From Octopus bimaculoides (Eukaryota): 64,000 nt of DNA. Shown piece by piece: positions 16,208 through 63,348 of the stretch (position 1 is its first letter; every line of letters starts with the position of its first letter). Location: contig NC_068990.1 in NCBI RefSeq assembly GCF_001194135.2, positions 88,037,504-88,101,503 on the forward strand. Reading direction: 5' to 3'. The notes under the pieces were generated by a model. The model was not told where the DNA came from. It was given only the letters and a program-made list of their open reading frames with translations, and did no database searches. The position numbers and the translations under genes are program-made.

Positions 16208-16238
<31 letters not shown>

Positions 16239-19822: not shown

Positions 19823-19856
<34 letters not shown>

Positions 19857-21178: not shown

Positions 21179-23933
21179 NNNNNNNNNNNNNNNNNNNNNN
21201 NNNNNNNNNNNNNNNNNNNNNNNNNNNNNNNNNNNNNNNNNNNNNNNNNNNNNNNNNNNNNNNNNNNNNNNNNNNNNNNNNNNNNNNNNNNNNNNNNNNN
21301 NNNNNNNNNNNNNNNNNNNNNNNNNNNNNNNNNNNNNNNNNNNNNNNNNNNNNNNNNNNNNNNNNNNNNNNNNNNNNNNNNNTATATATATATAGTGGCA
21401 TTAGAAAGGACATCCAAGTCAAATCAAACAATAGTTTGGTACAGCTCTCCAGCTTGCTAGCTCTGGTCAAACCAGCCAACCCATGCCAGCATGGAAAACA
21501 GATGTTAAAGGATGGCAATGATGATGATGATGATGATGATATACATAGGGTGAGGTTGTGTCTCCTTGTCTTGACATTATGGAACAGTTATAAACATATA
21601 GCACTGTTTTCATCGAAGCATTTCTAATCTCCCATAAAAGCGTCCAACCAGTGACAGGTATTACCTTGTTTTGAAACACAAGGGATGACAACCTGAAGAG
21701 GACCTAGTCAGAGAAAATCTGTTGACATGAATTCCATCAGAACTAACCAAGCTTGGAAAAGTGAACATTAAAACAATGATGATAGGCCAGCAACAAGACT
21801 TAAATCCTTCACTGCTAGAGATAGCAGCTGTTCACTAACTTCTACACAAATTTGAAAGCCACATAGGACAAGGGGTACAGACTGAAACAAGGTTATACAA
21901 AGGTCAAATTGTCCATGCTATTGATTGTTATTATTAATCTTATTCGTTAGTTAATTCATTAGAGCTAGTCGGATTAGAAACACTAATTAGTGTATCAGAT
22001 AAAAAAAATCTGTTGCTTATTTGCTCATTTCTTTCTTTCTGTTTTCATTGTATTGTTGTTTTTTTTATATTATTTTGCTTCTTTAATATTTTTTTAACTT
22101 TTTTATTGTTAAGCCTCATTGAATAAATGTGCTATAGTGTGTATGTATATGTGGGAATGTAAGTATATGTGTATGTATACATAGGTATGTGCATGTATGT
22201 ATATATGTGTGTGTGTGTGTGTATATATGTGTGCACATACGTACACAAGTGGATAATCCTACTGAATCCAAAGCAGATTTCAAGCCATTTTGTTTATCTT
22301 TAATACAAGGTTTCTTTACAGCTCAATCAATACATACATAGAAGAACTGAAGACCCTAGTTCTAAAAGTACTTAGGTCACATGACAGTCAGTATGGCTTA
22401 GGCACTTTTAGCAGTAGGGCTTTCTGTTGCATTGCATGCTCTATGTGTGTGTGTGTGTGTGTGTCTGTCTGTCTGTCTGTCTGTCTGCCTGTTAGTCTGG
22501 TAATCTCTTAACTCATCAGAAATGTTTAAAACTATTACTGATGAGCTAAGAAATATATATAACATAATACTATGTAATGTAATACACATTCTACATGTAT
22601 TAAGTCCTTTCATGTTCCATTGGATTTTTATTTTTATATGCTACTGTCCAACCATCTCCTACCAATACAGATATTTTCCTTTTTTTTACTTTATAAGATG
22701 TCTTCGAAATTTGAATCACTTTCTGAAAGTAGTTCTAAAGTAGAAATTATCTTAGCTGAGACCCCCAAGTGTTAAAACCATCTGTAAAGAGTCTATGTTT
22801 TAGTATCTAAATAAAACAGTTGTGGGTCTATCAACCCCTTAAGATCTTCATAGAAGAGGGTTTTGTCATCAGCATGCAATAAATATTGACTATCATCTGC
22901 ATCAACTTTAAATTTCACATCCTGCATCATTGCTGAATGAGATTGCTTCAGCCTCTATCCTTTGATCTTCCTTAACTACGATTTTTTCCAAACTTCAATC
23001 AAACATGCAGATTTAACTTCTTATGAAGCATCTTTAATATTCTATTTTGCTTGCATAATGCTGTAATTTTTTCAGAATACTGTGACAGATTGATGTTTAT
23101 CATCAGTTGCGGTAATCAACTGACTTAAAGTTTTCCTAAGATAATGCACCGTGAAAACAAAATTAACTCCCTGATTCGTAGGGTCAATAGTAATGAACTT
23201 GTGTTTGATGGAATGAAAACAACTTCGGCAAGTACCCAGATTTGGAGTTAATCAAGATTTGAAGGATGATCAGGAGCATTGTCTAAAAGTGGAAATGCCT
23301 TAAGCTTAAAATAATTTTCAAACAGTAACATTTGACATTAGGGCAAAAATGTTCAGTGAATCTTTCTGTAAGCAAATTATATGTAATTCAAGGCTTTTTT
23401 GTTAGATTTCAATAGAATAGGTAATCAAAACTTGGAGATGCTTTTCATAAGCTTGAGAATGATAGAATGATGAACAAGCAATGAATTAAGCTTCTAGTCT
23501 CCGGTGGCATTTACTCCTAACAACAATGTTGGACAACATTTTCCTGTTAAAACTCATTTTTCCTCTTTTGGGATTAGAGTTTCAAAATGTAAGCATGTTC
23601 AAAATAGCCTCTATTTATTTACTGTGAAAATAGATTTTACAACATCCTTCAGTTGTGCTGGAAATTCCAATACTTGGATATCAAACTTGCTGATTAATAT
23701 TTTATGGAATTTTTGTTGCCAATTGGACCTTTAACAGACAGGATTTTTTTTTCCAGCCTCTAATGAAATCTTGACATTTTAAAATATTTTTTGCATGTTC
23801 TATGTTTTCCTTGTTTTGACTGTCACTTCTATGAAAAAACTAGAAACATGAAACTTTGGAATAACAGTTTGCGAAACTTTCAGCTTATATAAATGCACAA
23901 ACACACACACACACACACACACACACTTAGTGA

Positions 23934-24920
<987 letters not shown>

Positions 24921-25479
24921 TAATTATTTAAAAAAATAAAAAATTTTAAATTACTATATGTGAAAATATATAAAATATATGTGTGTGTGTATATATATTA
25001 ATATGTATATACCTAAAGATATACATACACACACAAATATATATATATACATATAGACACATAAAAAAATTCATATATATACACATACATATATTTATAT
25101 ATACCTATGTATGTATTTATGCATGAGTATATTGGTGAGTCCCATAGTCTATTGGGTCATTGTCGGGGCACTTGTGGAGACTTAGTCTTCAAACAATGTG
25201 TCTAGGGCAAGCCAGCCCTATCCTTCTCCTAGCTATTTATACCTATGGTAGGATTTGAACTCAGCACTGCAAGATAAGAACTCATTATTTAGACAGCACT
25301 CATTGCAACTTACAGCGTTAAGCTACGCCTACCTGTGGTACTAATTTACAGCTAGGTGGACTGAGTCAGTGAGAGTCAAGTATCTTGGCCTTTGACACAG
25401 AGCAGCACCATTGGCTGGATGCAAACCATCACATTTTAAAACAGCAGCCTGACACCCAATCAACTTGGCTAGCTGTAAC

Positions 25480-25497
25480 TCATATATATATATATAT

Positions 25498-25542
<45 letters not shown>

Positions 25543-26077
25543 NNNNNNNNNNNNNNNNNNNNNNNNNNNNNNNNNNNNNNNNNNNNNNNNNNNNNNNNNN
25601 NNNNNNNNNNNNNNNNNNNNNNNNNNNNNNNNNNNNNNNNNNNNNNNNNNNNNNNNNNNNNNNNNNNNNNNNNNNNNNNNNNNNNNNNNNNNNNNNNNNN
25701 NNNNNNNNNNNNNNNNTATACATATATACATATACATGTATGTATTTATAGGTGTGCGTATGCGAGTATATATATATATATATATATATACAAGTATGTA
25801 TGTATGTGTGTGTATATATACATATATATATGCAAGCATATATACACATATATGTATGTATATATATATATTCACATGGAAACATACAAATATATGTATA
25901 CAAATATTTATATATTCAATACATACATAAACACGTTTATATAAGTTGTGTGTGCATATATATGCATACATACATAAACATGTGCGTATATACAGATATA
26001 TAGATATATATATATATATAAACATTTGCATATATATATGCGTATATAGGCATGTGTATAACAATATATGTATATAT

Positions 26078-26109
<32 letters not shown>

Positions 26110-26144
26110 TTGCATGTATATACATATATATATGGAAGTGTTTT

Positions 26145-34411: not shown

Positions 34412-34620
34412 TTATGTCATTTTTCTGAGAAGGGGATTAATTTGGTTCTCTCTGTTGCCAAAATCACCTCCATCATTATAGTGGTTGTATTTGCGCACCC
34501 AGCCACCTCGTGGATTGTTTAACTTGAATGGCCATAGGAAGTTGGAAGCGTATTTGAAGTGTTTGCCAACAGTGTGGATTTCATGGATTAAATCTTCCAT
34601 ACAAATGATACCAAAGCGAC
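34412..34620 (-). CDS. RPL7: RPL7 last exon (G)[14 protein letters not shown]...NPLLRKMT-stop
   Basis: Acceptor cttcttttag, TAA at 34412-34414, AATAAA at 34393-34398. Confidence 0.97.
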
Positions 34621-37600
34621 CTAAAAGAAGGAAAAAAACCATAATATATCATAAATAATCAAGTGGATCAAAGAGATTATCAAACAAATTTAAAACAAAA
34701 TACATCAATATTTGTACAATCAAAATATTTATCACTAAAATACTATCCTTTTAACTCAACACATTCAAAGCACAACAAGCCAAAGTAACCACAAAGCAAT
34801 TCTATTTAATGCTTTATACAGTCAATTGGATGCTTTATGTGCATGTATATATAATTCACAATATGGATGTCTGTTCAGATTGTCTTTTAAATTCACTAAC
34901 AAGGATTCGGTCAGACCAGCATTATAAAAGACGTTTGCCCAAAGTGCAACGCAGCATAAATGAACTTAAAACCATGACTTCAGAAACAGTAAGTGGAAAT
35001 GACCAAACAAAAAGTACTAACAGGAACTGGTGACAATATGCTACTACACATGTTTACTGTAACTAAAATTTAATAACAAAATGTTTTTATGTTAGAGGGA
35101 ATTTGCTGCCTTTGTAGAAAGAGAGAGTGCTAAAATTTACTTACCAAGCTTCCTTTCAATGAGAGCATTATCAGTCAATGGAATACGTCGTCCTTCTATT
35201 TTACCATATCCTCTTTTATAGACCAATTCACGAACACTCTTCAGGTTAGGGTACCTAACAATAACAAAAAAAAAATCCATGTCAAAATCAAGATAAAACA
35301 AGCTTATTCAAAGCGACAAGATAAATGTATTTTAATATGATCAAACGATCCCACATCAGGCAAAATATATTTGTAATTTATTTGCCTCTCCGTATATCCA
35401 TAAAAAGATATTCTCACTTAGTCAACTGATAACCTTCAAAGGATATTTTGTCAGCTCATGTTATTCAACACCTCTTCTGTGTAACTTTAGCCTCATTCGA
35501 GAAAAAACTGTCAAAAGTGTTCCTATTTACACCATCTATGTGTGTTTTCTTTGCAGTTTATTAAGCAAACTTACGACATAAAAAAGTGGATTCCTTTCCT
35601 CCATGATTGAAATACTGAGTCGGCATGAAAGTAATTTCCTTTTCGGAAATAGAGTTACAATTTTTTTTTAATGACTTTTTTCTATGTTATCTTTTTCCTT
35701 CTGACATTTGATAGCTGTTACTTTTTGCTTACTTTAGAAGCAAACTACACATAATTCTGTTCACAGTTGTCAATTATAAAATGCTGTGCAAAATCGAACA
35801 CTCACATTTTACTGACACAAGCAACATTAGTAGTGCTCATGCTGAAGTTAAAATGAAAATCACACCACACGAATGATAACATGCCTGGATGGCTGCTTAC
35901 CCCCAAGTGATATAAGGTTCGCAAATCTTGATCATCTGTAAAGTTGCTTTGTTGACTTTGACAAAGACACCATTGTTAATCTGTCTCAGCCTAAACAACT
36001 GCATTACCTTTCTGGGTCGTGGATGGACTCCATTGATACTGGAAAATAGAAATATGAGATAACATACATGAAATATAGGAAACTGAAATAGGAACATTAC
36101 ATTTCATCAAAAGTTGGAGTTATTAATAGTGTTGTAAGGTAGCATTAACCCTTTCTAACACACCTTATGTGTTTCACTTAAATTCTAAAATAATCATCAA
36201 CATTTAACAACCATATTCCATGCAGATATCAACAGTAGATTAAAAAAAATTAGGTCCACAGGAATTGAAATTTGTGGACTAAAAGGTGGTTGAAAGTGGT
36301 GGAGATACAGGAAGATAAGCAAATATACTGACTAGTTCAGATTTTGCAGCCTTCACATACATGTTATTTACAGTTTAGACTGAAAATTAATTGCTTCTGC
36401 TAGATACATAGAACTTAAGATTACAAATGTTGAGCTAGTTCTGCACCAAGTCTATTGCTTTATTCTTTAATACAGGAAGTCACTTTTCCTTACATCATCA
36501 TCATTTAACGTCTGTTGTCCATGCTGGCAAGCAGGGAAGTTGCATCAGACTCTAGTCTGACTCGGCATAATTTTTATAGTTGGATGCCCTTCCAAACACC
36601 AACCACTTGACAAGATTGTGCTGGGTGCCTTTAAGTGGCACCAGCCTTGCAGGTCAATCTTCACCACCATGGAGACCAGTCCTAACAGTTCTGCTGTGGA
36701 ATACCGGTTTACTTGAGCACAGGAAGGTGTCAGGCATCTTGGTCTTCTTTCATCTCACCTGACAAGTCCAGAGTCCTGAGATCATTCTTCAGTACTTCGT
36801 CCCATGTCTTCCTGGGTCTCCCACTTCCACACTTTACATTTACTTTGAGAGATCGGCACTTCTTTATGGAGCTGTCAGCAACCCTCGTCACATGATCAAA
36901 CCAGCAGTCTTCTCTTACACGCAGCCATTAATTCCCATGCCTAACTTCTCTCTCAAAACATTAGCACCATCAGACATGTATACTTATGTATACAAATCCA
37001 GCAGGGTATACTAGCCTCATTCCTTTCTAACCTTCACATGTCCTCTGCATTCAGGGCTCACGTCTCACTATCATGTAGAATGTAAAACACTCATATACAC
37101 CATATAGTTCTCCAAAACCCCAATCTTCACCCAAAATCAAGAGAAAAAAATAAGCTGTTACAATGAGGAGTTAAGAATTTGAAGTAATCTTTTTGTAGTA
37201 ACATACCCTCTAATTCTTATGACAAAAGCCAATTTTGCACCACTGGGAACATAATAGTTTCCAGCTCGGCGAGCTTCACGACGCAGCCTGATCTCCTCAC
37301 GTGCCTGCATGCGATACTCTTTTACATATTTCTCAGCTCGATGAAAGATTGTTATCTTCTTCTTCTTGAGTTTCTGAAGTGAAAGATTAATTATTGGATC
37401 ACTCTACTGTCTTAAAACTAGAATTGGGAAGAGAAAACTCTTTTGCCATTCATCTGTGAAAAAATATTCAGATGGCATATATAAGCTAACAACTATTTAA
37501 CATTCATTCACCTGTTTCAGTTTATAAATCAATAATTCCTTACAGTTGAGTTACATAACCACTAAAGAGAGATTAAAATATTTTTATAAATATCTAGACT

Positions 37601-40600
37601 ACATTTTAACAGATTTTAATAAAAAAAAAAAAATTAAAAAAATTACTGTTCAATTTTTAATCAAAAACAATTTTCCCTTTTCAACATCAATATCTAGTTC
37701 TAATAAAACCATCTCCACTAAAAAGAATGCAAAATGATAAAGGAATAGTAAGAGATACCTACAGCTTTTTTCTGGAGAATATTAGCCTTTCGTTTAATAG
37801 CTTGAGCTTTCCTGGTTTTCCTTCTCTTCAATACACTTTCAGGTACTTTGGGGATTTTTTTTTCACTGGAAAGAAAAATAATTTTCAGATAGAGAAAATA
37901 CAGAAAAAACACTATATTCATGGAATTTAGAAATAACTTCGTAAGAGCTTAAATTAACAATACCAAAAGATGTAATAAGTAAATGAGAAAACAAAATCAC
38001 ACTTACCCATCAGTTTTTTTCCCAGCACTGAAAAATTAAAAGTACACATTGAAAATTTTTTTTGTTACTCAATATTTCAAATAAACCATTTAGAATTTTA
38101 AACTGATGATAATCATCTAAAATATATTTAACTAGAAAACACATATATATTGCATATTATTTGGACTGTTTTTAAAAGCACAATAAAGCACTCAGGATAT
38201 TGTAAGTTGACCTCATCAGCTGAACAGATAATCATCATCATCATCATCGTTTAACGTCCGCTTTCCATGCTAGCATGGGTTGGACGATTTGACTGAGGAC
38301 TGGTGGAATAATGTATAGATTAATAAGGTTTTAATGAAAGCTACAGGGTTAACTTTCCAGATGTTTATAAAATTTGTGTGGCATGATCCTTACTCTTATG
38401 TGGTATGCATTCATAATGCATGGTGCTCAGTATTATTTAACTAAAAAGTAAATATATCACATTCTTCAATGAATTTACTGTTGAAAACATGTAGAATGTT
38501 TGTGAATAAACATGTTTCAATGCTTCGATATTGCCAAAGTGTATGGAGTTAAAAAAGGTTTAACACAGAGTGAGTGATAGTGTGAGGTCTATTGGTTAGG
38601 GTACTGCACTCACAAATGCAAGATGGTGATTTCAATTCTTGGACTGGACAGGGCAAGCATTCCACTTTGCTCCTGCCCACGCAACAGTAAATGAGTAACC
38701 CTACAACTGACTGGCATGCCATTCAGTGGGAATCTGCTCCTGCCCACGCAACAGTAAATGAGTAACCCTACAACTGACTGGCATGCCATTCAGTGGGAAT
38801 CTTATAATCTCTCATATGCTACAAAAACTTAACTAACCCAATGAGCCCTAGAACTTGAAACAGTAAAGGTTGCACACAATAGTGTGGACAAGATATTCTA
38901 GTATCACCTTAACCATTTTAGCATTTAGATTACTCTCCCAAATTTATTGCTTACTTATTAAAACTGTTTTGTATAAATCATACATTATCTTGTAGCTATG
39001 AAATCTCACTGAGAATGATATAGTAGGGTAGGTGTGAGAGGCAGGATCTAGCTGGTTTGAATACAAAGCAGGTAGAATATTTCGCCAGGTTAAATGCTAA
39101 ATGGTTAAGCTCTAGAGCTTTAACAATTAAAAAATGGTTATCTACACAAACAAGACAACACCTGAGTCAATCAGAGGCCTCTACTAACAGTCCCAAATCC
39201 CTCAAACTCTAACCTACAGTTTTAAACAAGGACACATTGGATTCTATAGTTCTAAAACGTTCTGAAAGGACAAGTTAGTCACTGTTGGAATGCTTTTGAT
39301 GAATATGAATGGTGAGCCGGAATTAAAAATCTGATAAAATAATACTCACTCTCCAGTTTTCTTTGCAGCCCTGAAAAATTAAAATGACATCACAGTCATA
39401 TATTGACAAACACAACAAAGTAATTTTCAATATTACATAGCTAATGTTTATATTAAAATTAAGACGTATCTTCATAATCCTCATTAACATTTGTGTCTTT
39501 TTGCTTGCATGGATTAGACAAAATTCATTAAGACAGATTTTCTATGATTGGATGCCACTTCCGAGCACCAACCCTCACCCGTTTTCAAGTATGGTAATAT
39601 TTCTCTATGGCCAGATAACATCTTCACAGATTAGGACGACAGATTAGTAAAGCACGTTTACAACTAGGTTGATGTCAAGATAGAGACACAAGCACACACA
39701 ACTACCTAATTTCCACAAAGCTGTGATTGAACTGGGCTTACAAGACATTTGTCCAAGTGTCATTGCATGAGGCTGAACTGAAAATCATGTGGTTGGGAAG
39801 AACTTAACCACATAGTATTGCTTTAAATATTCAATAATTCTGAAATTTTTTATATGTATAACTTGTCAACAAAATTATTTAATTCCATAAAAGTACAGCC
39901 AGCCATCACTTACCAACAAGTATGGCATAATTATTTTAGGTACCTAGTCATGAGTAAACAGATCCCCCCACAGCCCCTTTAGAGGCAATATCCAGGATAT
40001 CAGCAGGAGGGAGAGAGGGCTGTTTCAGTAGCCTGTTAGTACCTTTAGAGCTGAGTAGATTAGAGCAATCCACTGTCCAGTTCAAGAATTGAACCCATGA
40101 CTTTACCCAGAGTCAAACATCCATAGACAATGACCTTTCACATACTCAACTACACATGAACAAGATAATACTCACACTCGAGTTTTCTTGGCAACACTGA
40201 AAAATTAAAATAACAGCATATTTAAGATCTATATTGATCAACATTTCAATTAAGTGATTTACAATATTATATAAATATGAAAAACATCTAAAGAATTTAC
40301 TGTCTTAAATTACTAAAATATACTGCTTTCATAATCATTTAATGTCTGTTTTCAATGCCGACATGGTTTAGACGGTTTGACTGAAAAGTAGTAAGCCAGG
40401 GAGCGGCACCAGGTTCCAATCTGATTTAGCATGGCTTCTACAGCTGTAGGCTCTTCTTTATACCATTGTGGAAAGTTCCAAGGGACTGTTGAAGAAAAGT
40501 GGGGCAATAATGGGGTGGCTATTCATGTAAAAACAACAAAATAATGGGTTCAATAGGTCAAGTTTTATTTGTGAAATACAGTTGCTTTGAATTTGTTTCA

Positions 40601-43600
40601 AAAAGAGTCCTATGTTTGTGACGTTTAGTTGGGGTGGGGGTGCCAGGAATGTTGCCCAGGTGTCAAGGGGGCAACAGCCCAAAAATTCCTGGGAACCAAT
40701 GATGTAGAACATATGTAAGGATTTACACCACTTCATTCTTCTATGAGACCACCTATCCTTATAGATGGTTGGTTATCACTTATCCTATTAAGTTTATTTG
40801 TAATTTCTTACTACCGATTACAGCTGAATAGATTTAAGCAATGCACTGCCCTGTTCAAGAATTGAACCCATGACTTTACTCAGAGTCAAACATCCATAGA
40901 CAACGAGCGTTCACATATTCAACTACATATCAACAAGGTAATACTCACGTTCTAGTTTTCTTCAAAGGACTGCAAAATAAAAATAACAGTATATTACACA
41001 TCTATATTGATCAACATTTCAAATTAAGTGATTTACAATATATTGGCACTGGTGCATAATTATTGCAGCGTTTTTTGGGCGAAATTTTATCAACAAAAAC
41101 ATCTTTAAATGATTATTCTGGAGCATATTTACCATCTACTTCAATTAATGCTCACAATTTGCTTGGCAGACAGTCAGGCCGTCATTTAAAGATGTTTTTG
41201 TGGCATTAAATTTCTTCAAACTAAGCCGCAATAATTATGCACCAACCCAATATGAATATGAAAACCATCTAAAGAATTTACGGTCTCAAATTACTAAAAT
41301 ACACTGCTTTCATAATCCTTTAACGTCTGTTTTCATCGCTGGCATGGGTTAGACAGTTTGACTGAAAAGCAGTAAGCCACACCAGGTTCCAATCAGATCG
41401 AGAATGGTTTCTAAAGCTGGATGCCCTTCCGTACACCGTTGTTAAAACGATGATAATCATTATTCACCTTTATACATGTAGAGCTGTGGTTCCCAAAGTG
41501 GACTATTGCCCATTCCACTCCACCCCCCTGGGAGCAGTGGAAGGTTCAAAGTGGACATTGAAGAAAAGCGGGGCAATAATTGGTAGTGATTCATATAAAA
41601 ACAAAATAAAGGGTTAGCTTAAGTTCTATTTGTGAAATATAGTAACTTTGAATTTGCTTCAGAAAGCAGTCTATATTTGTGATGGTTAGTTAGGGTGAGG
41701 GTGCTAAGAATGTCACCTGGGCGTCAAGGGGGCAACAGCACAAAAATGCCTGGGAACCACTGATGTAGAGCATGTGTGAGGATTTACACCACTTCATTCC
41801 TCTAAGAGACCACCTATCTTTATAAGTGGTTGGTTATCACTTATCTTATTAAGTTTATTTGTAATTTCTTACTACCCATTACAGTTGAATAGATTTGAGC
41901 AATGCACTGCCCAGTTCAAGAATCAAACCCATGACTTTACCCAGAGTCAAACATCCATAGACAATGACCTTTCACATACTCAACTACATATCAACAAGGT
42001 AATACTCACGTTCTAGTTTTCTTCACAGGACTGAAAAATTAAAATAATAGCATATTAAACATTTATATTGATCAACATTTCAATTAAGTGATATACAATA
42101 TATTTGCGCTGGTGCATAATTATTGCAGCATTTTTTTGGCAAAATTTATTCAACAAAAACATCTTTAAATGATTATTCTGGAGCATATTTACACTCTCTG
42201 AGTAGTTGGCGTTAGGAAGGGCATCCAGCTGTAGAAACTCTGCCAGATCAGATTGGAGCCTGGTGTAGCCATCTGGTTTCACCAGTCCTCAGTCAAATCG
42301 TCCAACCCATGCTAGCATGGAGAGCAGATGTTAAACGGTGATGATGATGATGATGATTTACCATCTACTTCAATTAATGCTCACCATTTGCTTGGCAGAC
42401 AGTCAGGCCATCATTTAAAGATGTATTTGTGGCATTAAATTTCTTCAAACTAAGCTGCAATAATTATGCACCAACCCAATATAAATATGAAAACCATCTA
42501 AAGAATTTACGGTCTCAAATTACTAAAATACACTGCTTTCATAATCCTTTAACGTCTGTTATCATCGCTGGCATGGGTTAGACAGTAAGCCAAAGAGCCA
42601 CACCAGGTTCCAACCAGATTGAGAATGGTTTCTAAAGCTGGATGCCGATCCTTACACCGTTGCTAAAACAATGATAATCATTATTCACCTTTATACATGT
42701 AGAGCTGTGGTTCCCAAAGTGGACAGTATTGCACATTCCACCCCACCCCCCTGGCAGCAGTGGAAGTTTCAAAGTGGACATTGAAGAAAAGCGGGGCAAT
42801 AATTGGTAGTGATTCATATAAAAACAAAATAATGGGTTAGGTTAAGTTTGTGAAATACAGTTACTTTGAATTTGCTCCAGAAAGCAGTCTGATTGTTAGG
42901 GTGGGGGTGCAAGGAATGTCGTCTGGGCGTCAAGGGGGCAACAGCCCAAAGATGCCTGGGAACCAATAATGTAGAGCATATGTAAGGATTTACACGACTT
43001 TATTACTCTTAAGAGACTACCTATCTTTATAGGTGGTTAGTTATCACTTATCTTATTAAATTTATTTGTAATTTCTTATTACCCATTACAGCTGAATAGA
43101 TTTAAGCAATGCACTGCCCAGTTCAAGAATCGAACCCATGATTTTACCCAGAGTCAAACATCCATACACAATGACCTTTCACATACTCAACTACATATCA
43201 ACAAGGTAATACTCACGCTACAGGTTTCTTCGCATCACTGAAAAATTAAAATAACAGCATATTAAACACTTATATTGATCAACATTTCAATTAAGTGATT
43301 TCCAATATAAATATGAAATATAAATATGAAAACCATCTGAAGAATTTACTGTCTCAAATTACTAATATACACAGCTTTCATAATCCTTTAACGCCTGTTT
43401 TCATCGCTGGCATGGGTTAGACAGTAAGCCAAAGAGCCACACCAGGTTCCAATCAGATTGAGAATGGATTCTACAGCTGGATGCCCTTCCTTACACCGTT
43501 GTTAAAACAATGATAATCATTATTCACCTTTATACATGTAGAGCTGTGGTTCCCAAAGTGGACAGTATTGTCCACCCCTGTGGCTGGTGGGAGGTTCAAA

Positions 43601-46600
43601 GTGGGCATTGAAGAAAAGTGGGGCAATGAGTAGTAATTCATAACAAAATAAAGGGTTAGCTTAAGTTTTACTTGTGAAATACAGTTGCTTTGAATTTGCT
43701 TCAGAAAGCAGTCTATGTTTGTAATGGTTAGTTAGGGTGAGGGTGCTAGGAATGTCACCTGGACGTCAAGGGGGCAACAGCCCAAAAATACCTGGGAACC
43801 ACTCATGTAGAGCATGTGTAAGGATTTACACCATTTCATTCGTCTAATAGACCACCTATCTTTATAGGTGGTTGGTTATCACTTATCTTATTAAGTNNNN
43901 NNNNNNNNNNNNNNNNNNNNNNNNNNNNNNNNNNNNNNNNNNNNNNNNNNNNNNNNNNNNNNNNNNNNNNNNNNNNNNNNNNNNNNNNNNNNNNNNGGTT
44001 AAGTTTTATTTGTGAAATACAGTTACTTTGAATTTGCTTCAGAAAGCAGTCTATATTTGTGATGGTTAGTCAGCCTGGGCTTCAAGGGGGCAGCAGCCCA
44101 AAAATACCTGGGAACCACTCATGTAGAGCATGTGTAAGGATTTACACCACTTCATTCCTCTGATAGACCACCTATCTTTATAGGTGGTTGGTTATCACTT
44201 ATCTTATTAAGTTCATTTGTAATCTCTTACTACCCATTACAGTTGAAAAGATTTGAGCAATGCACTGCCCAGTTCAAGAATTGAACCCATGACTTTACCC
44301 AGAGTCAAACATCCATAGACAATGACCTTTCACATACTCAACTACATAACAAGTTAATACTCACGCTACAGGTTTCTTCGCAGCACTGAAAAATTAAAAT
44401 AACAGCATATTAAACACTTATATTGATCAACAGTTCAATTAAGTGATTTCCAATATTATATAAATATGAAAACTATCTGAAGAATTTACTGTCTCAAATT
44501 ACTAAAATATACTGCTTTCATAATTGTCATTAAATGTCTGGTTTCCATGCTGGCATGGGTTAGACTGACTGAAAACTAGTAAGCCTGGTTCCAATCTTAT
44601 TTAGCATGGTTTCTACGTCTGGATGCCCCTCCTTACACGATTGTTAAAACAATGATATTGCCTTTAAACATGTAGAGCATGTGTAAGGTGTTATACCACT
44701 TCATTCTTCTAACTGACCACCTACTCTTATAGGTGGTTCGTTATCACTTATCCAATTAAGTTTATTAATTTCTTACTTTTATATGCTTATCATTAAAACT
44801 TGGCATATATATGAATGTTACTGTTTAATTTATGTCAACATAATTTTAATACAAATACTATTTTAATTATAAAAAAAATATTTACCCTTTATCAGCCACC
44901 TTCTTCCTAAAAAGAAAAAAACAAAAACAATTAGTTTGAAATTGAAGAGACAAAAATTCTAGTTAGCTTTAAATTCATTGCAATACAACACATTTTTAAA
45001 CTATCCCTTTTCCACAATAACTAAGAAATTAACCATTACAAAATGAAAAATATTTAATCCTTTAGCAACCAGCCAAAATATTTGACCCATTTTATATTCA
45101 AACTGACTAGATCCAACCTTTCCACCATACCCTACAATGCCATTCTAAGAATAAAAAACTGTCACACCATGCATTATCTCAAAGCTATGAGATAATGCAT
45201 GGTTAATACAAAGCAGTGATTAAAATAAGCATTACATTTTAACAATCTGAATGCTAATGGATTAAATCTGAAATTTTATTAGAATACTGAAAACACTTGT
45301 TTACAGTACCATATACTAACCAGATTAACACAGTTGGTATAACAAAATTTCAATGTAAATTTTATTAAATCATTGATCAAACATATTTTCATTAGGTAAA
45401 CGCTTATATATAATCTGACATTGATGTACCAAATTTTATGTTCTCTTGGAATTAGGCCATTTCTATTACATTCTAGTCTTTTTTTAAAAATTACATGAAC
45501 TTCAGATTTAGGAAAAGCAACTTAATTAGAAAGATTTCCAAAGGAAGTAGCTACAGTGAGACAAAGAAGAAGTATAATCCATAGCAGAGTTTTAACAAAA
45601 TGTGAATAGAATTTGAATAGCTGTACTAAAAGCAATAATAAATTGATTCTAATAAGTAAATAGAGTGAAAATATTTTCCCTATTTTATATTTGTCCTGGT
45701 TTAATATATATGGTAATATTTAGAGTAGCTTGCAGAACCTGTCAGTTGTACTCCAGATATCACTTGAAAATAATAAACTGTTTTCTATGAAAGTAGCTTA
45801 GAAAATTCATTAAAACACATTATAGTTAAAAAGTGTACTAACAAAAAAGTAAAAACTTATATTGAATATTTTAATACATTATATATAACAAAATAATACT
45901 CACTCTGCAGGTTTCTTTGCATCTCTGAAAAATTTAAATTATATCATATGAAAAGTGGTTTTCAATATTAATAATATAGGCAAATTGAAATAAAAAGATA
46001 AGTGCTTAAATAACTAAATATTAAAGCGTAGTGGTTTGATTACATTCATAGCAAAAGTGTATAAACTGATTTTCTGTTTCAGAATTATAGTTACAAGCTG
46101 ACTTTCTTCACTCTTGGAAGATGTTTCATACCAAAAAATGTTCATTGCCCATTCAATTCAATCTATTGATACTGTTAATTCTTTTCATATTATGAAACAC
46201 AATGTCTAATTGTTTGCTGTTAATCAAAATAATCTGCAGTTGTCTACCCAGCTATGTGGCATTATTTCTACAAACTTTATTACTATAACATTGATTTAGC
46301 ACTTTCGATGATAAACTATAATGAAAAATAGAAAAATACTTAGGAAGATTTTAGTTTGAAACACCAAGACTAACAAAAGCAAGGCAGTTGCTTCTAATCA
46401 GCCCTCAATAGATACTGTTGGCAGAAACAGTCAAACAATATTAGATACTTGTTTGAGGTCAAAAGAAGACTACATAATCTTAAATAAGCAATACTCACTT
46501 GCAATTTAGAAATTTCATAATTTTTCACAGCAAGAAACCCAATGAAACAGCATAAACAATTAAACCTTACACCTATAAGCTCTCTCTGGTATGCAAATAC

Positions 46601-49600
46601 TAAAATTTGTTTTAATGATTTAAAACAATGTCAACAAAACAATCAGCTGAGAAAGAAAAACATTTCCATCTCCAACAAAATACATAGTTCAATTAACTTT
46701 ATACTCACGGCTTCTTTGCTACTTCTTTCTTCCTACAAAAATAAGAAAAAAAAATGTTTAATCATCTACATTTTACTATTACGAGTGTAAAACAAGACGG
46801 CTATGCTGAAATATTCATCAGAAAGATTAGAAAGACAACAAAAGTCCCACAAGGTACATAGTTCAAAACTTTTGTTGAAAAATTATGGTTAGCATGACAG
46901 CAACTCCAAAACACTTAGACAAAAAATAAATTTAAAAATCATATTTCAGTTATCTCTCATCTCTATATGTATTCACCTCTTCAGCAAGACACTTGCCAAT
47001 TTCATATCCCTCAGTACCATAGCAAACTTAGTTGGCAGATCTTGTCTTAAAGGTATTTGATGACCTCACCAGTGCTGGTGCCACACACACACACACACAC
47101 ACAAGCACCCAGCAAACTCTTAAGTGGCTGGCACTAGGAAGGGCATCCAGCTGTAAAAAAAATTAAAAAGCATGCTACAGTAGACACTGGAGCTCAATGC
47201 AGCCCTCTGGCCCATCAGTTCATGTTGAACCGTACAACCCAAACCAATATGGATTATACAGTTCAACATGAACCAGACATCTATTACTGAAGAGATGGGA
47301 CATGTTGAAATCACGTGATCAGGCAGTTACAGCATCCATAGCTGACGATTCTTATCTGCCAGTACTATGCGTGTGCTTATATACACATTGCATCCACAGG
47401 AGGTCCTCGAGTTAGATAAAATGCAATATTTGGCACTAACAATATCCACATTAAGTTGGATATAGATTGCTTTTATATATATATATATATAGCAAAAAAG
47501 AGACACTGAGAGTGAATTAAGCAGACATGATGTGATAGTGAAATGTCTGACAAAAGCAATTCTGCCATAGACAGCATCTATGTCGGTTTCAATCTACTTA
47601 TAACACATGACAGCCAAAGCATCACACTTTAAACAGCTTGGTTCAAGAGCCACATATACAACTCATAGTGTCCAGAAATATTTTCTAGTGAATTATGATT
47701 GCATGATATTAAGACCATCTTTTTAAAAAATTAAAACAAATTGCTATTACTAAGACCTTGTTACAAACAAAGGTGACAAAACTACTTACTTCTCCACTTT
47801 CTTTGGCCTAGAAAAGAAGAAAATATTTTTGTTAGTTACATGATATATTTACAAACATTAGATGGGATTATATTTAATTTACAATAAATTATTTCAATTA
47901 TTTAAGGCAAACACAAGTAAAACGCTAATTTTTTTCACTTTAATGTTTTTGTCTGTATTTAATTTCAATTTGCATAGGTTCTTCAATTCGCTACAATATC
48001 TTTAAAGTAAACAAAATCAAAAATTTTAATTGGTGGCGGGGGAGAAGAGGTGGGGGGATTAAAATTTTTTTTGCATGTTTGTAATCTCCAACATCTAAAA
48101 TGTAGGAATCTGAAAAATTCTTTTTTTTTTAAATGCATTTTCCAAGGAGAGGTACGAAACTGCATTAGCCCCAAATATAATATTATTTAACAATGTCTTA
48201 TGAACACAAAATAGATACTTACGCTTCAGCCTTTTTTGGAGTCCTGAAAAATTAAAATACATAAATGATTTATATAAATGAACATGTCAATTTTTTTTAC
48301 AAAATTACATTTCTTACTGAAAAAGACTAAGCTATGCTGCCATCATATCACAGCAGTATTATAAAAGGTGAACTGTTTTTGCTATTCAAAGCTACATGTC
48401 AGCGGCAAAGATATGTGTGTGTGTGTGTGTGTATGTATGNNNNNNNNNNNNNNNNNNNNNNNNNNNNNNNNNNNNNNNNNNNNNNNNNNNNNNNNNNNNN
48501 NNNNNNNNNNNNNNNNNNNNNNNNNNNNNNNNNNNNNNNNNNNNNNNNNNNNNNNNNNNNNNNNNNNNNNNNNNNNNNNNNNNNNNNNNNNNNNNNNNNN
48601 NNNNNNNNNNNNNNNNNNNNNNNNNNNNNNNNNTGCCATGATTTAGTTCTTGACAAAAGAGGGGTGTTTGTTGACTGTGACATCTACTGAAGGTTACAGA
48701 TTATTTACAAAAACACCATTGACAAGAACAATGTGTACAGATGGATGAAAATGTGACATCATCATCATCGTCGTCGTTTAACGTCCGCTTTCCATGCTAG
48801 CATGGGTTGGACGATTTGACTGAGGACTGGTGGACCAGGAGGCAACACCATGCTCCAATCTGATTTGGCAGAGTTTCTACAGCTGGATGCCCTTCCTAAT
48901 GCCAACCACTCCGAGAGTGTAGTAGGTGCTTTTACGTGCCACCGGCACGAGGGCCAGTCAGGCGGTACTGGCGACGGCCACGCTCGAAATGGTGTAACTT
49001 TTACACAAATCACTAATAAGTGGGTGGATTGAATTAGACATATGAGTGGCAATCTCTGAGTTTGCTGCACAACTAGATTGTGGTCACAATGCATTATAAA
49101 AGATGGGAGTCTGAGGAATCACATTAACTCTTGATTTGAAGGAAAGAAGGGTGGTTTGCTCTGATGCAAGCATTTGAAGATTATGAAAACATTTTTCCTA
49201 ATTTAGTGACAAGGGATGAAACGTAGCCATATTTCATGATCCAGAACTGAAGGCTTAGTTCATGGTATAGTGACAGTCCTTCTCCAAAACCTGAAACATT
49301 CAAGAACCAGCAACCATCACAGAATGGGATGACAAAGGCCTCATTTTCCTTGCACCAGGAATAACAAGTAGTACATTGGGACACTCAAAAAGCTTAAAAG
49401 TCATAATAAGGAAGATATCCAGTAAGAATCTGAATTCACCATGACAATGTGCAAGCAGACAAGCAACAAACCAGACAATCAGTGAATTAGGCTGATCAAT
49501 GGCCCTTCATTAAGATCCGACACCCTCCTCAAACTTCCACCTATTTGATCGATTGATAGGCAGACCCCAGGTTTACAAAATGACCGCAAAAGGTACAACA

Positions 49601-51178
49601 GTGAGCAGCTCATTTTTTCAAAGATGATTCAAGTGTTAGGTCCAACGATAGTGCAGATGCATTGCCTGTGATAGAGGCTATCAGTAGTATCTTTACATAG
49701 AAGAGTTATTCTACTAACATGTGCAATTTGAATGACCAATACCAATAAGTCATCTTCTGCATTATTTTTGTCAGAATCCATGTGAAAACTTAAACAGGAT
49801 ATTAACAATATACGAATTTATTACACATACCGATAAAAAAGAAATAATTTCGTTGAAATCAGACCAAACCAGAGTGAAAAAATGTCCTAATCTATTAAGA
49901 TCTTGCTTTTAGTGTTATTTTTTTAATTATAAATGGTCGGGTACTGATATTCGCAGAGTTCAATACAATCTATCAACATATATCCACATTGATCACACTA
50001 TGACAAATTCAAAATATAATGCTTTTAACCAATTTACAAACGATTGATTTTGTTAGGGTAATGGGTACCGATAAATACATCTTAATATTGGTGACTAATT
50101 TTCAATATCAGTTATTGATATTATAAAGAACCCCTATACAAAAAAAAATCTCTATATAGTCTAAGGATGTTATAACATAATTTCCATAGAAGTTTCAAAC
50201 ACCAAGCACTCCATAAGAGTACTAAAGTAACATTCGACAGAACTCAACTAAATCAACAGAAGCAGGGCGCCAAGAATTTCAAGACTGATGTGTACAAAGT
50301 GATCAATCTTCTTGCATCTAGCTTCTAAAATCTAATTGTTGAATGGAAAATTCTACCCATCTTATAAACCACTGGTGGCAAAGAATACGTACAACACCCG
50401 TTTTCGGCCTAACAAAAACCCTAAACACTGGGTGTGCGTATTTTTTACTTTCACCAGTTTCAACACACAACACCGAAATAAAGCTGAACAGTTGCTCCAT
50501 CACCAGTAACACTGAGCAGCGATAAATCATAAACATTTGAGGTATTTAATGTTCAGAATATTAAGTCAAGTAGGACATGTAAAACAATAATTCTGTTTGA
50601 AAATTAAGGTGTCGCCTTTAACAATCGGGACAGCCTGTGCAGAACAAATATTTCTGATTCAAAGAACGTGTCCAGGACAACCAATATTCCATATGCCCAT
50701 CCCTTCGAATAATGAAGGTGCCTACTACTTCTAGCAGTTCGAATGATCAGAGAGAGAAGACACGTTAAATGATTGTTCCATCCCTTGAAGAGAAACTTCT
50801 CTCGGAGTATAACAGCTACATGTCTATACACAGAACCACTAAAGTCCATGACACTCAAGTACACTGAATATAAGATTTACAAAACTGGTTTATGTTATTG
50901 ATCAACTTTAAATGTCTTTTTAATAATCCTCAAAAAAATAACGCACTTCTTATTCTGCTCGTGCTTCTGGATGTATTTCAGTGCCACATAAACATTATTC
51001 AGTAATTCTGATTCATTTGATTAAAATGTTTTACGTTATAGATTTCGCATGCAAGTATTTTTAAAAGGTTGCCAATATTTAAGTGTGGATGCCACAAAAA
51101 GATAAACTGATGCTGGGAAATTATACAAAGTTGATGTATTTAATGTATGAACTTAAAATATACTCACTCTACAACCAT
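34412..51178 (-). CDS. RPL7: 60S ribosomal protein L7 (uL30), whole spliced CDS span; 18 coding exons, 990 nt, 329 aa in this model
   Basis: The exons join in frame with GT-AG boundaries. Core peptides [70 protein letters not shown] and NFLWPFKL...GGDFGNRE are diagnostic of uL30. Confidence 0.95.
35145..35254 (-). CDS. RPL7: RPL7 exon [36 protein letters not shown]
   Basis: 110 nt, ttgttag acceptor / gtaagt donor, phases 2 to 1. Confidence 0.97.
35901..36038 (-). CDS. RPL7: RPL7 exon [45 protein letters not shown]
   Basis: 138 nt, ttttccag acceptor / gtaagc donor. Confidence 0.97.
36715..37080 (-). mobile_element. Degenerate RTE LINE 3' fragment in an RPL7 intron
   Basis: Similar to the 20963-21178 fragment (GRPRKTW-type coding) and upstream ETWALNAED...RLERNE, with stops. 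Confidence 0.7.
37207..37373 (-). CDS. RPL7: RPL7 exon [20 protein letters not shown]...KLAFVIRIR
   Basis: 167 nt, ctttcacttcag acceptor / gtatgt donor. Confidence 0.96.
37763..37865 (-). CDS. RPL7: RPL7 exon [34 protein letters not shown]
   Basis: 103 nt, tttctttccag acceptor / gtaggt donor; starts in phase 2. Confidence 0.95.
38007..38027 (-). CDS. RPL7: RPL7 micro-exon, 21 nt (xAGKKTDG)
   Basis: ttttaatttttcag|TGCTGGGAAAAAAACTGATGG|gtaagt. Confidence 0.88.
38668..38801 (+). repeat. Perfect 67-bp tandem duplication inside a SINE relic
   Basis: TGCTCCTGCCCACGCAACAG...GTGGGAATC twice (38668, 38735). Confidence 0.9.
39350..39370 (-). CDS. RPL7: RPL7 micro-exon, 21 nt (xAAKKTGD)
   Basis: ttttaatttttcag|GGCTGCAAAGAAAACTGGAGA|gtgagt. 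Confidence 0.86.
40176..40196 (-). CDS. RPL7: RPL7 micro-exon, 21 nt (xVAKKTRV)
   Basis: ttttaatttttcag|TGTTGCCAAGAAAACTCGAGT|gtgagt. Confidence 0.82.
40949..40969 (-). CDS. RPL7: RPL7 micro-exon, 21 nt (xPLKKTRT)
   Basis: tttttattttgcag|TCCTTTGAAGAAAACTAGAAC|gtgagt. Confidence 0.78.
41041..41252. mobile_element. Mariner-derived MITE (second copy 42101-42481 carries a nested SINE piece 42193-42355 with ATTTAC duplication)
   Basis: TIR TATTGGGTTGGTGCATAATTATTGCGG resembles mariner TIRs; TA flanks. Confidence 0.8.
41484..41762 (+). mobile_element. hAT-type MITE with 8-bp TSD (further copies 42705-42968, 43544-43804; partial copies ending near 40702 and 44120)
   Basis: Termini C(T/A)GTGGTTCCCA / TGGGAACCACTG flanked by ATGTAGAG on both sides. 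Confidence 0.85.
42010..42030 (-). CDS. RPL7: RPL7 micro-exon, 21 nt (xPVKKTRT)
   Basis: ttttaatttttcag|TCCTGTGAAGAAAACTAGAAC|gtgagt. Confidence 0.8.
43217..43237 (-). CDS. RPL7: RPL7 micro-exon, 21 nt (xDAKKPVA)
   Basis: ttttaatttttcag|TGATGCGAAGAAACCTGTAGC|gtgagt. Confidence 0.82.
44365..44385 (-). CDS. RPL7: RPL7 micro-exon, 21 nt (xAAKKPVA)
   Basis: ttttaatttttcag|TGCTGCGAAGAAACCTGTAGC|gtgagt. Confidence 0.82.
44886..44906 (-). CDS. RPL7: RPL7 micro-exon, 21 nt (xKKVADKG)
   Basis: gttttttctttttag|GAAGAAGGTGGCTGATAAAGG|gtaaat; weaker donor than the others. Confidence 0.72.
45904..45924 (-). CDS. RPL7: RPL7 micro-exon, 21 nt (xDAKKPAE)
   Basis: tttaaatttttcag|AGATGCAAAGAAACCTGCAGA|gtgagt. 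Confidence 0.85.
46709..46732 (-). CDS. RPL7: RPL7 micro-exon, 24 nt (xKKEVAKKP)
   Basis: cttatttttgtag|GAAGAAAGAAGTAGCAAAGAAGCC|gtgagt. Confidence 0.83.
47790..47807 (-). CDS. RPL7: RPL7 micro-exon, 18 nt (xPKKVEK)
   Basis: tcttcttttctag|GCCAAAGAAAGTGGAGAA|gtaagt. Confidence 0.83.
48223..48243 (-). CDS. RPL7: RPL7 micro-exon, 21 nt (xTPKKAEA)
   Basis: ttttaatttttcag|GACTCCAAAAAAGGCTGAAGC|gtaagt. Confidence 0.86.
49140..49720 (+). mobile_element. Heavily decayed mariner transposase in an RPL7 intron (antisense to host)
   Basis: Fragments across frames: LVTRDET* (IVTGDETW), [24 protein letters not shown]; many stops and frameshifts. Confidence 0.7.
51168..51178 (-). CDS. RPL7: RPL7 start-codon exon (17-nt exon 51168-51184; coding part MVV+GA)
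   Basis: ctattttcag|GACATC-ATG-GTT-GTA-GA|gtgagt; ends in phase 2, matching all downstream micro-exons. Confidence 0.82.
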
Positions 51179-51548
51179 GATGTCCTGAAAATAGGGAAAC
51201 ACAAAAAAATAATTAGTATACAAAATACATTAGATTTAGAAATTTAACTACAAAAAGAAGACAAAAAATAGCTGAACAAAATATAATTATTGCTTAAGAA
51301 CACGTGTTAAATGATCGTATCAAAAAATAAGGAAAATAAATCGGCCATGGAGTACGTTACCACGTTGTTGAGTAGAATGTAGATTTTAAACGGATAATCT
51401 ATGATTTACAAAGACATATAAATAATAATTACTATTAAATAATATTAAATGAATATATACGATACATTTGTTAATGTTTACGAAGGAATTTTACCTCTAC
51501 AAATGCCGATGATAAAAGATTTAAACGCGAGTAACAATATGTACTTAC

Positions 51549-51631
51549 AATTTAGCTGACAAGCAACACTAAAAAGGAAGTCACGCAGAGAATTCTTCCC
51601 GAATAGCACATCTGCGAAAAAACCCGGAAGT
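51549..51631 (-). promoter_or_regulatory. RPL7: RPL7 non-coding exon 1 with 5'-TOP/TCT start (CTTCCTTTTT at 51580-51571) and an upstream ETS/GABP-type site
   Basis: The pyrimidine run typical of ribosomal protein mRNA 5' ends lies 32 nt before a gtaagt donor (51543-51548). CCGGAAGT is at 51624-51631. Confidence 0.75.
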
Positions 51632-57683: not shown

Positions 57684-57765
57684 ATTCCAATTGATGGCAC
57701 ACCACTTATCATGAATTACTTTGCTCATGATTGTGATATCCATATAGGAAGAAAGAGAATGTTTC
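57684..57765 (+). CDS. Unknown secreted protein, coding exon 3 (IPIDGTPLIMNYFAHDCDIHIGRKRMF); an alternative in-frame acceptor at 57642 would add 14 aa
   Basis: Phase 0 to 1, gtaagt donor at 57766; I cannot decide between the two acceptors from sequence alone. Confidence 0.65.
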
Positions 57766-62292: not shown

Positions 62293-63258
62293 GTAACTGT
62301 TTCTTTTAGTTAAAAAAAAAAAAACAATTTTTTCTCTTGTATCAATTATATTTATTAAACATAACTTAGTGGAATGAAATTATGTAACATTGAATGTCTC
62401 TGTCAAGGGTGTTCAAAATATCGAAAATGTTTTATTTGTTCCTCGCCGTGTCTTTGTCTTTATAGCTACAGAACTGCGTGTTGAATTGATGTTGTTTAAC
62501 TCCAGATCGATTCTGATTAAGTAGACCTTTGATCAAAAGCATTCCAGCCATGACCGTCCCATATATTCAAGGACATCGAACAATACTTTATCTACCGTGT
62601 CATTTTTTTTTTTTTTTAATGTTGGTAGAGTGCGATCTGAAGGTGATTTGACTGTTATTTCTAAGAGGTCGAACTATAATGGAGATTCCCACTATATCTC
62701 ATGTGGGTTTGTTTGTAGATAGTACCGAGTTCAGTTTCCACCGAAATTGGTTTTGCCTTTCTTCCTTTCGGTAAAAGAAAGTTCGGCGGAGGTAAAGATC
62801 ACGGACCGCACCCCCTTTGCGATATGTTGGGGTTTTATTTTTTAAAGGAACACACTATATCGAAGGCGGAGATTCCGAATCTGAAAAATAATCTGCAGTT
62901 CAAAATTTAAATCCACCCCCTTCACCCCACGCTAAATTTCTTAAATTTTCACTTTTTATTAAAACATTTTTTTGGCGAAATACATAGAAAAACATGCTGG
63001 TAACAGAAAACAAACCCTGTTGACCTCTTGGATTGGACTAACTGAACATGGGGTAAGGGTTCTAATCTGCTACTATCCAGAAAGAAAGATTTCTTTCTCA
63101 TCTGCTGAGCACCATAAAAGTGGAGCTAAGCCTTTAAAAGCTTGCCAAAGTTCTGGAGACATATAATTGACTGTTAATTAGCTGATTAACTTTGTTATAT
63201 GAAATTATGAAACATTACAGAAAATTCAAAAGATTAATCTATTTCTCTGAAATTTCAG

Positions 63259-63348
63259 ATCCTTCTCGAAACTTGAGAGGGGCTCGATGGGTTGAACCTG
63301 CAGATGGAGATCAGATGACACCCCCAGATATGCCTATAGAATGGGAAG
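63259..63348 (+). CDS. NDUFAF2: NDUFAF2/NDUFA12-family exon 2 (NPSRNLRGARWVEPADGDQMTPPDMPIEWE); gene continues beyond the window
   Basis: tttcag acceptor and gtaatc donor, phase 1 to 1. PxEWE resembles NDUFAF2 (IPTEWEAW) more than NDUFA12 (VPPEWHRW). Confidence 0.8.

Follow-up and report, generated by a model that had tools for sequence, protein, structure and literature searches.

The ribosomal protein uL30 (RPL7) of Octopus bimaculoides is encoded by a gene that is predicted to place a lysine-rich tail of at least 88 residues in front of the conserved core, and to build that tail from a tandem array of at least 12 microexons. The gene lies on the minus strand, from about 51580 down to 34412, of a 64,000-nt stretch of contig NC_068990.1 (assembly GCF_001194135.2, forward-strand positions 88,037,504 to 88,101,503), hereafter the window, which consists of AT-rich eukaryotic DNA with 11 runs of N (2246 N in all). 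Splicing of an ATG exon, 12 microexons of 18-24 nt and five core exons yields a 990-nt open reading frame (ORF) of 329 aa, with GT..AG at 17 of 17 introns. We consider it reasonably probable that a single tail-bearing gene, a duplicated microexon array and a disordered polycation that binds and neutralises rRNA together account for this locus.

The gene model rests on several concordant lines of evidence. An earlier note on this DNA, made from the sequence alone, had joined these exons into a 329-aa model with an 88-aa tail, and the product of our spliced model is identical to that sequence. With the tail peptide as a tblastn query, each 7-aa block was recovered separately on the minus strand, from 48242 to 37838, and a human RPL7 query placed the conserved core on the same strand, from 37861 to 34418. 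The tail blocks are each flanked by a polypyrimidine tract with AG and by a GT[AG]AGT-type donor, and the real microexon borders lie one base before the codon blocks drawn previously and end two bases short of them. All 12 microexons consist of one nucleotide, whole codons and two further nucleotides, sharing one common phase, and the introns of the array measure 141-2924 nt. The outcome is a run of 12 consecutive exons of 18, 21 or 24 nt between ordinary exons, well within the limit of 36 nt used to define the architecture of the micro-exon genes (MEGs) of Schistosoma. Individual features are listed in Table 1.

Table 1. Predicted exons of the uL30 gene, assembly gaps and dispersed repeats, in coordinates of the window.
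Feature	Position	Strand	Remarks
Putative non-coding first exon	51549..51580	-	5' terminal oligopyrimidine (TOP) motif CTTCCTTTTT, GTAAGT donor; exon, promoter and first intron ~93% identical to O. sinensis
ATG exon, 17 nt, GACATC-ATG-GTT-GTA-GA	51168..51184	-	ATG at 51178; codes for M-V-V and the first two bases of E
Microexon 1, 21 nt, TPKKAEA	48223..48243	-	20/21 nt identical to O. sinensis L002:8418-8438
Microexon 2, 18 nt, PKKVEK	47790..47807	-	18/18 identical to O. sinensis L002:10238-10255
Microexon 3, 24 nt, KKEVAKKP	46709..46732	-	23/24 identical to O. sinensis L002:11338-11361
Microexon 4, 21 nt, DAKKPAE	45904..45924	-	splice signals, joined model
Microexon 5, 21 nt, KKVADKG	44886..44906	-	donor GTAAAT
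Microexon 6, 21 nt, AAKKPVA	44365..44385	-	first of five recently duplicated units
Microexon 7, 21 nt, DAKKPVA	43217..43237	-	recently duplicated unit
Microexon 8, 21 nt, PVKKTRT	42010..42030	-	recently duplicated unit
Microexon 9, 21 nt, PLKKTRT	40949..40969	-	recently duplicated unit
Microexon 10, 21 nt, VAKKTRV	40176..40196	-	recently duplicated unit
Microexon 11, 21 nt, AAKKTGD	39350..39370	-	splice signals, joined model
Microexon 12, 21 nt, AGKKTDG	38007..38027	-	orthologue O. sinensis L002:21510-21530
Core exon 1	37763..37865	-	canonical uL30 begins here; no in-frame ATG
Core exon 2	37207..37373	-	long N-terminal helix of uL30
Core exon 3	35901..36038	-	Ribosomal_L30 domain
Core exon 4	35145..35254	-	joined model
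Core exon 5	34412..34620	-	TAA stop at 34414-34412
Assembly gap	48440..48633		intron between ATG exon and microexon 1
Assembly gap	43897..43996		intron between microexons 6 and 7
SINE-like repeat	48990-48755	-	further copies 42190-42355, 38307-38231, 40465-40335, 41430-41316, 43491-43436
SINE-like repeat, more copies	47103-47159, 36645-36550, 7035-7251, 18218-18093, 12947-12732, 21466-21529

A putative TOP start at 51580 lies upstream of a GTAAGT donor and is followed by the 17-nt ATG exon, a layout typical for ribosomal-protein genes. The annotated coding start of O. sinensis (L002:3001, ATGGTTGCAGA) is orthologous to the ATG at 51178, the region spanning promoter, TOP motif and ATG exon being ~93% identical between the two species, and the corresponding start in Argonauta reads ATGGTAGCGGAGACCGA. 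The next in-frame ATG after 51178 sits within the conserved core, and full-length uL30 from this gene must therefore start at 51178 and carry whatever tail is spliced in. The core itself is that of an ordinary uL30: it matches Ribosomal_L30_N (PF08079) with 83 bits at residues 95-165 (gathering cut-off 31.6) and Ribosomal_L30 (PF00327) with 63.7 bits at residues 171-221 (gathering cut-off 23), and residues 89-329 are 65-72% identical to other protostome uL30. The top 50 Foldseek matches all come from ribosomes or pre-ribosomes (E to 7.6e-18, 52-66% identity), and every one of the top matches with a cross-checkable chain is uL30. The locus is the sole annotated uL30 gene of O. bimaculoides, and the top database matches included no other octopus uL30 that lacks the tail.

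The tail directly precedes the KIPKVPE start of the core and forms a Lys/Ala/Pro-rich, low-complexity extension with 28 Lys, 15 Ala, 10 Val, 8 Thr, 8 Pro, 5 Glu and 5 Asp among its 88 residues (net charge +21). Spacing between KK dipeptides is 7 residues over the last seven repeats and 4-9 residues in the first half, so that the lysine count and the mostly heptad spacing described in the earlier note were both reproduced. The likelihood of such an array arising fortuitously was gauged by counting phase-symmetric segments of 18, 21 or 24 nt that run from YAG to GTRA[GA]T, are free of stops and encode KK. The gene strand holds 12 of these between 37866 and 51167, the opposite strand of the same region holds none, and 300 first-order Markov simulations of the region gave a mean of 0.003. 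A chance origin of the microexon array is excluded. The remaining 46 kb of the window contains one such segment, at 57748-57765 on the plus strand (GAAGAAAGAGAATGTTTC, KKENV), which is isolated and most likely a chance match.

Public records place the tail in a restricted lineage. Our model is 100% identical to RefSeq XP_052826945.1 ("60S ribosomal protein L7, partial [Octopus bimaculoides]", 326 aa), a 5'-partial record that lacks only the ATG exon. A tail is also present in seven RefSeq isoforms of O. sinensis (322-343 aa, with tails of 81-102 aa), in a 336-aa model of O. vulgaris and, at ~40 aa, in a 281-aa model of Argonauta hians. The same microexon layout is found at the O. sinensis locus (L002, 15 microexons) and at the Argonauta locus (L003), where the ATG exon is followed by five microexons of 18, 21, 21, 21 and 21 nt. 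Two intronless JGI metatranscriptome contigs likewise encode uL30 with a K/A/P-rich tail, namely L001 (961 nt, 295 aa, tail 57 aa) and L004 (1169 nt, 341 aa, tail 103 aa). In a neighbour-joining tree of the core domain these two group as sister to the octopods (bootstrap 100/100), a position suggesting that they most probably come from decapodiform cephalopods. They show that mature mRNAs bearing such tails occur and that coleoid cephalopods have the tail in common. The feature is thus found in three species of Octopus, in Argonauta and in the two sister-lineage mRNAs, and is missing from the bivalve, gastropod, annelid, brachiopod and nemertean uL30 that we inspected, which start at K-[LI]-P-x-V-P-E and measure 243-247 aa. 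The mollusc proteins among them bear out the contrast, drawn in the earlier note, between a typical uL30 length and the 329 aa of the octopus model.

The tail has also entered a structural record. In PDB 9EHO, the 80S ribosome of O. bimaculoides solved by cryo-EM, the entity for uL30 (chain F) is the 343-aa O. sinensis X1 sequence, tail included; the accompanying preprint concerns a break in helix 88 of the 28S rRNA (PMC13321053). A search with residues 1-178 recovered mainly arthropod uL30 with shorter basic extensions and no Octopus transcript fragments, and our literature searches turned up no account of such a tail, or of its microexons, on uL30 of any cephalopod. The tail sequences are therefore already public, and the feature and its gene structure seem to be undescribed in the literature searched.

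Two assembly gaps fall within the locus, and because both lie in introns and every microexon is symmetric they cannot break the frame; the array as read may be incomplete at both. At the gap between microexons 6 and 7, alignment to the paralogous units shows a break in register: the left flank covers unit positions 1-403, and the right flank resumes at ~179. A collapsed tandem repeat is the simplest explanation and may hide ~1 kb and at least one further 21-nt exon; an internal duplication of ~225 nt is the alternative. In O. sinensis, the place corresponding to the gap that precedes microexon 1 contains two further microexon units of the ASKKAEA type, which repeat every ~590 bp. The SKKGDK microexon of O. 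sinensis was not found in the window when up to 3 mismatches were allowed, and a scan with the conserved acceptor motif gave no additional or degenerate units. Since the gaps may conceal microexons, 88 and 329 aa are minimum lengths in O. bimaculoides. Ahead of TPKKAEA, the RefSeq protein has an initial R, whose codon (AGG, window 48245-48243) combines the AG of the acceptor with the exon's first base; the RefSeq model thus starts in the last two bases of the intron, with no link to the ATG exon, in agreement with annotators having failed to bridge the upstream gap.

The array grew by duplication of units of ~0.8-1.2 kb, each consisting of an intron and a microexon. Copy number is ~5 in Argonauta, at least 12 in O. 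bimaculoides and 15 in O. sinensis. Five units of the O. bimaculoides array (44385, 43237, 42030, 40969 and 40196) are recent duplicates with 82-96% identity when the microexons are aligned with 100 nt on either side, and what the older units have in common is chiefly the acceptor motif TTTTAATTTTTCAG and the donor GTGAGTAT. In O. sinensis these five are matched by three units, and duplications private to that species are present elsewhere (ASKKAEA twice, EKKVAKKP), which implies that copy number changes after speciation. Orthologous microexons of the two Octopus species differ at 16 of 147 sites (10.9%), exactly as do the 150-nt intron flanks on each side (also 10.9%), and most of the exon differences alter the amino acid; reading frame, splice sites and the AAG-AAA at the centre are conserved. 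Among the recent paralogues (microexons 6-10, 44385-40176 on the minus strand), exons differ by 29-38% between sub-families and the ~220-nt flanks by only 5-15%, a comparison of few sites, which hints that residues other than Lys are diversifying, or else that the flanks are subject to constraint or gene conversion. A Rfam scan of the window returned no matches, and the repeated intron units accordingly carry no snoRNA family known to Rfam.

A dispersed repeat resembling a short interspersed nuclear element (SINE), of ~230 nt and ending in a GATGATGATG tract, occurs in at least 12 copies in the window (Table 1). Several of the copies lie within the uL30 introns and repeat units and could promote unequal crossing-over there.

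Recognition of such small exons may be favoured by their signals. Nine of the 12 microexon donors read GTGAGTAT, two more begin GTAAGTA and one is the weaker GTAAAT, and most acceptors have a long pyrimidine tract that ends in TTTTTCAG. Purines make up 69% of the microexon sequence and 49% of the region, and the Lys pairs are mostly encoded by AAG-AAA. Purine-rich GAA-type elements are classical exonic splicing enhancers. We infer that the AAG-AAA cores probably serve both as Lys-Lys codons and as enhancers of this kind, which, in combination with near-consensus splice sites, would let the exons be recognised. Phase symmetry would further allow any subset of microexons to be skipped in frame, giving isoforms that differ in tail length. 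The predicted isoforms of O. sinensis differ by exact blocks of this type, namely one ASKKAEA (7 aa), EKKVAKKP (8 aa), or PKKVEK plus KKEVAKKP (14 aa), as would be expected of cassette skipping.

Upstream of the KKEVAKKP exon lies a 33-nt stop-free segment (47009-46977, minus strand) bounded by AG and GTGAAT, which is kept in both duplicates of O. sinensis (L002:11058-11090 and 14166-14198). It was rejected as an exon, being absent from all annotated isoforms, and is probably conserved intron and possibly a splicing element.

What the tail does can be approached through its predicted structure and position. In an AlphaFold2 model of the RefSeq partial protein (40-sequence alignment), residues 1 to ~90 have no secondary structure and a predicted local distance difference test (pLDDT) score of 46-56, and the N-terminal helix at residues 94-155 is confident (pLDDT 80-94); the isolated core model is moderate, with a mean pLDDT of 61. 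The model thus agrees with the disorder that had been proposed for the tail. Contact between the N-terminus of uL30 and expansion segment 7L (ES7L) of the large-subunit rRNA, which the earlier note had listed as established, is documented (PMC10281867). We propose that the tail is an intrinsically disordered polycation that would project from the solvent face of the 60S subunit at the point where the N-terminal helix of uL30 meets ES7L. Its most likely role would be the non-specific electrostatic binding and charge neutralisation of the flexible rRNA expansion segments of the long octopus 28S, with nuclear or nucleolar import and assembly as possible added roles, and selection would then act on charge, spacing and length instead of exact sequence.

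The numbering of the octopus 28S in the 9EHO preprint places helix 22 at 324-329 and the helix 88 loop at 4314-4324, compared with 317-322 and 4355-4360 in human (PMC13321053). Such near-human numbering implies that the octopus 28S is almost of human length over this stretch, with large expansion segments. It would be unusually long for an invertebrate, which bears on the ES7L idea, and the authors of the preprint leave its length unanalysed.

Several points weigh against this explanation. First, the exon joins in O. bimaculoides are predicted from splice signals, orthology and a 5'-partial RefSeq model. Second, enlargement of ES7L, contact of the tail with RNA and enhancer action of AAGAAA are hypothetical, as is the previously suggested binding of the tail to ES7L, mRNA or chromatin; the text of the 9EHO preprint contains none of the words uL30, RPL7, extension, ES7 or N-terminal (PMC13321053). 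Third, the O. sinensis isoforms are Gnomon predictions in which two of the variable exons are identical paralogues, and ambiguous mapping of reads at such exons could mimic exon skipping. Finally, the equal divergence of exons and introns also fits a nearly neutral appendage.

This last point leads to an alternative that is unlikely but retains an appreciable probability, in which the tail is a runaway product of unequal crossing-over between intron units, helped by the SINE-like repeats and tolerated on the solvent face without any specific function. The matching exon and intron divergence between species, a copy number that ranges from 5 to 15, the dispersed repeat copies within the introns and the variable basic extensions (25-55 aa) of arthropod uL30 are all consistent with neutral growth. 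However, the frame, the KK cores and the splice sites have been kept in every unit in three genomes, and the tail has been retained across the coleoid lineages sampled. Ribosomal protein genes are also under strong selection for expression, so that 12-15 extra introns would be costly.

A second alternative, which we regard as rather improbable, holds that the microexons are real but mostly skipped in most tissues, the long tail being a minor or tissue-restricted form and most ribosomes containing a short or near-canonical uL30. Runs of consecutive microexons are intrinsically hard to splice, an ATG exon joined straight to 37865 would stay in frame, and the O. sinensis isoforms show cassette behaviour at three or four exons. 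Yet at most three microexons are missing from any of the seven O. sinensis isoforms (their shortest tail is 81 aa and their longest 102 aa), the splice sites are near consensus, the sister-lineage mRNAs carry long tails, and the depositors of 9EHO picked the longest isoform.

Tentatively, and with a similarly low probability, the array could act as a dial for ribosome heterogeneity, in which combinatorial and possibly tissue-specific (e.g., neuronal) inclusion of 12-15 phase-symmetric heptad microexons grades the length and charge of the tail, and in which units duplicate fast and exons outpace their flanking introns. If true, graded tails would tune the interaction of octopus ribosomes with the very long 28S expansion segments or with mRNAs.

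Doubtful to a greater degree is an extraribosomal role, in which the tail would behave like the C-terminal domain of a linker histone and act on DNA, chromatin or partners of histone H1, and not on the ribosome. The tail had been called histone-H1-like, a description that holds for its Lys-, Ala- and Pro-rich composition and fails at the level of sequence: a phmmer search of the tail against all PDB chain sequences (E<=10) returned no H1 chain, the only match being octopus uL30 (9eho_F). A search of the tail alone (104 aa) against a database of 5.8 billion proteins gave zero matches, itself included, and is uninformative on H1 similarity; the empty result presumably stems from composition filtering, as the composition filters of HMMER lower sensitivity for such sequences. 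The tail is also ~11% acidic with abundant Val and Thr, unlike the H1 C-terminal domain, and we conclude that the resemblance is one of composition only. Of the two T-P-x-K sites of the cyclin-dependent kinase (CDK) type reported previously, both are present (TPKK at residue 5 and TPLK at residue 60), and TPKK is shared by O. sinensis, O. vulgaris and one sister-lineage mRNA, but the TPLK site around T60 is not conserved in O. sinensis. A chromatin function would be in keeping with the Lys/Ala/Pro-rich composition and the conserved TPKK, and has a precedent in the proposals made for RpL22 and RpL23a of Drosophila (PMC3074143). Against it stands the seemingly sole copy of uL30 in the genome, by which the tail enters every ribosome that uses the protein.

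That the microexons are an artefact of annotation or assembly and do not occur in mRNA is highly improbable, for although the O. bimaculoides RefSeq model is flagged partial and the locus contains two gaps, 12 canonical exons stand against the 0.003 expected by chance, the architecture is conserved in three genomes, the full-length protein has no other start codon, and intronless mRNAs of the sister lineage bear the tail.

Taking a tail-bearing uL30 with a disordered, rRNA-binding polycation as the preferred explanation, the closest parallels at the protein level are found in insects. Extensions that resemble H1 are carried at the N-terminus by RpL22 (eL22) and RpL23a (uL23) of Drosophila, as the earlier note had stated (PMC3074143), and by the C-terminus of RpS6 and the N-terminus of RpL23a in mosquitoes (PMC11764897). 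Like these, the octopus tail is lineage-restricted, Lys/Ala/Pro-rich, of low complexity, presumably disordered and terminal on a conserved ribosomal protein, and in both cases function is not established. Unlike them, it sits on uL30, occurs in cephalopod molluscs, lacks detectable similarity to H1 and shows a distinct heptad period. A tandem array of 12-15 microexons encodes it; the insect extensions were compared at the protein level only.

At the level of gene architecture, the nearest analogue is provided by the Schistosoma MEGs, whose symmetric microexons encode disordered products and yield variants through exon skipping (PMC10526429, PMC10399815). In both systems, many very short symmetric exons follow one another, with far longer introns between them and ordinary exons on either side. 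The likeness is one of architecture and not of homology: MEGs encode small secreted proteins of a parasite, whereas the octopus array encodes the N-terminal tail of a cytosolic housekeeping ribosomal protein in near-identical heptad units, and its alternative splicing is so far suggested by the predicted isoforms of a sister species.

Within the uL30 family itself, the octopus protein shares with the canonical member of eukaryotic 60S subunits both Pfam domains, the fold and a putative TOP-like first exon, and differs from it in its N-terminal tail of at least 88 residues and in 12 additional introns. Basic N-terminal extensions also occur in hemipteran, orthopteran and termite uL30 (270-277 aa) and in unidentified organisms from metatranscriptomes (287-295 aa). 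These occupy the same position before K-[LI]-P-x-V-P-E and are likewise K/A/P-rich, but, compared at the protein level, they reach 15-55 aa without heptad regularity, against 88-103 aa in the present case. Longer rodent RPL7 chains among the PDB sequences (260-270 aa) have short N-terminal repeats, which we take to be 12 residues long. The N-terminus of uL30 is thus a recurrent hot-spot for extension, of which the octopus tail is an extreme case and not a new category. What appears to be new is the combination of a core ribosomal protein with a heptad tail of ~90-100 aa, a duplicating array of 12-15 microexons and apparent alternative inclusion.

Ribosomal proteins are among the most conserved known, and here a protein of the 60S subunit has gained a polycationic tail of ~90-100 residues in one lineage. 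The genome shows how it was constructed, by repeated duplication of a 21-nt exon with ~1 kb of intron, which makes the locus a clean natural case of protein elongation through microexon duplication. It would also allow study of how the spliceosome copes with a run of 12-15 microexons in a very highly expressed gene, and it provides a testable candidate for specialisation of the cephalopod ribosome, beside the recently reported break in the octopus 28S rRNA.

Elsewhere in the window, weak tblastn matches to RPL7 at 62829-63305 (E 0.8-3) were dismissed as chance, and most of the long ORFs listed run across stretches of N (16144-17127, 19326-19871, 20964-21627, 25385-26115 and others) and were set aside as assembly-gap artefacts. 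A 254-aa ORF at 24156-24920 on the plus strand matches the two-pore-domain (K2P) / Ion_trans_2 potassium-channel family (PF07885, E = 2.3e-15), and a K2P-type channel gene next to uL30 probably has one of its exons there.

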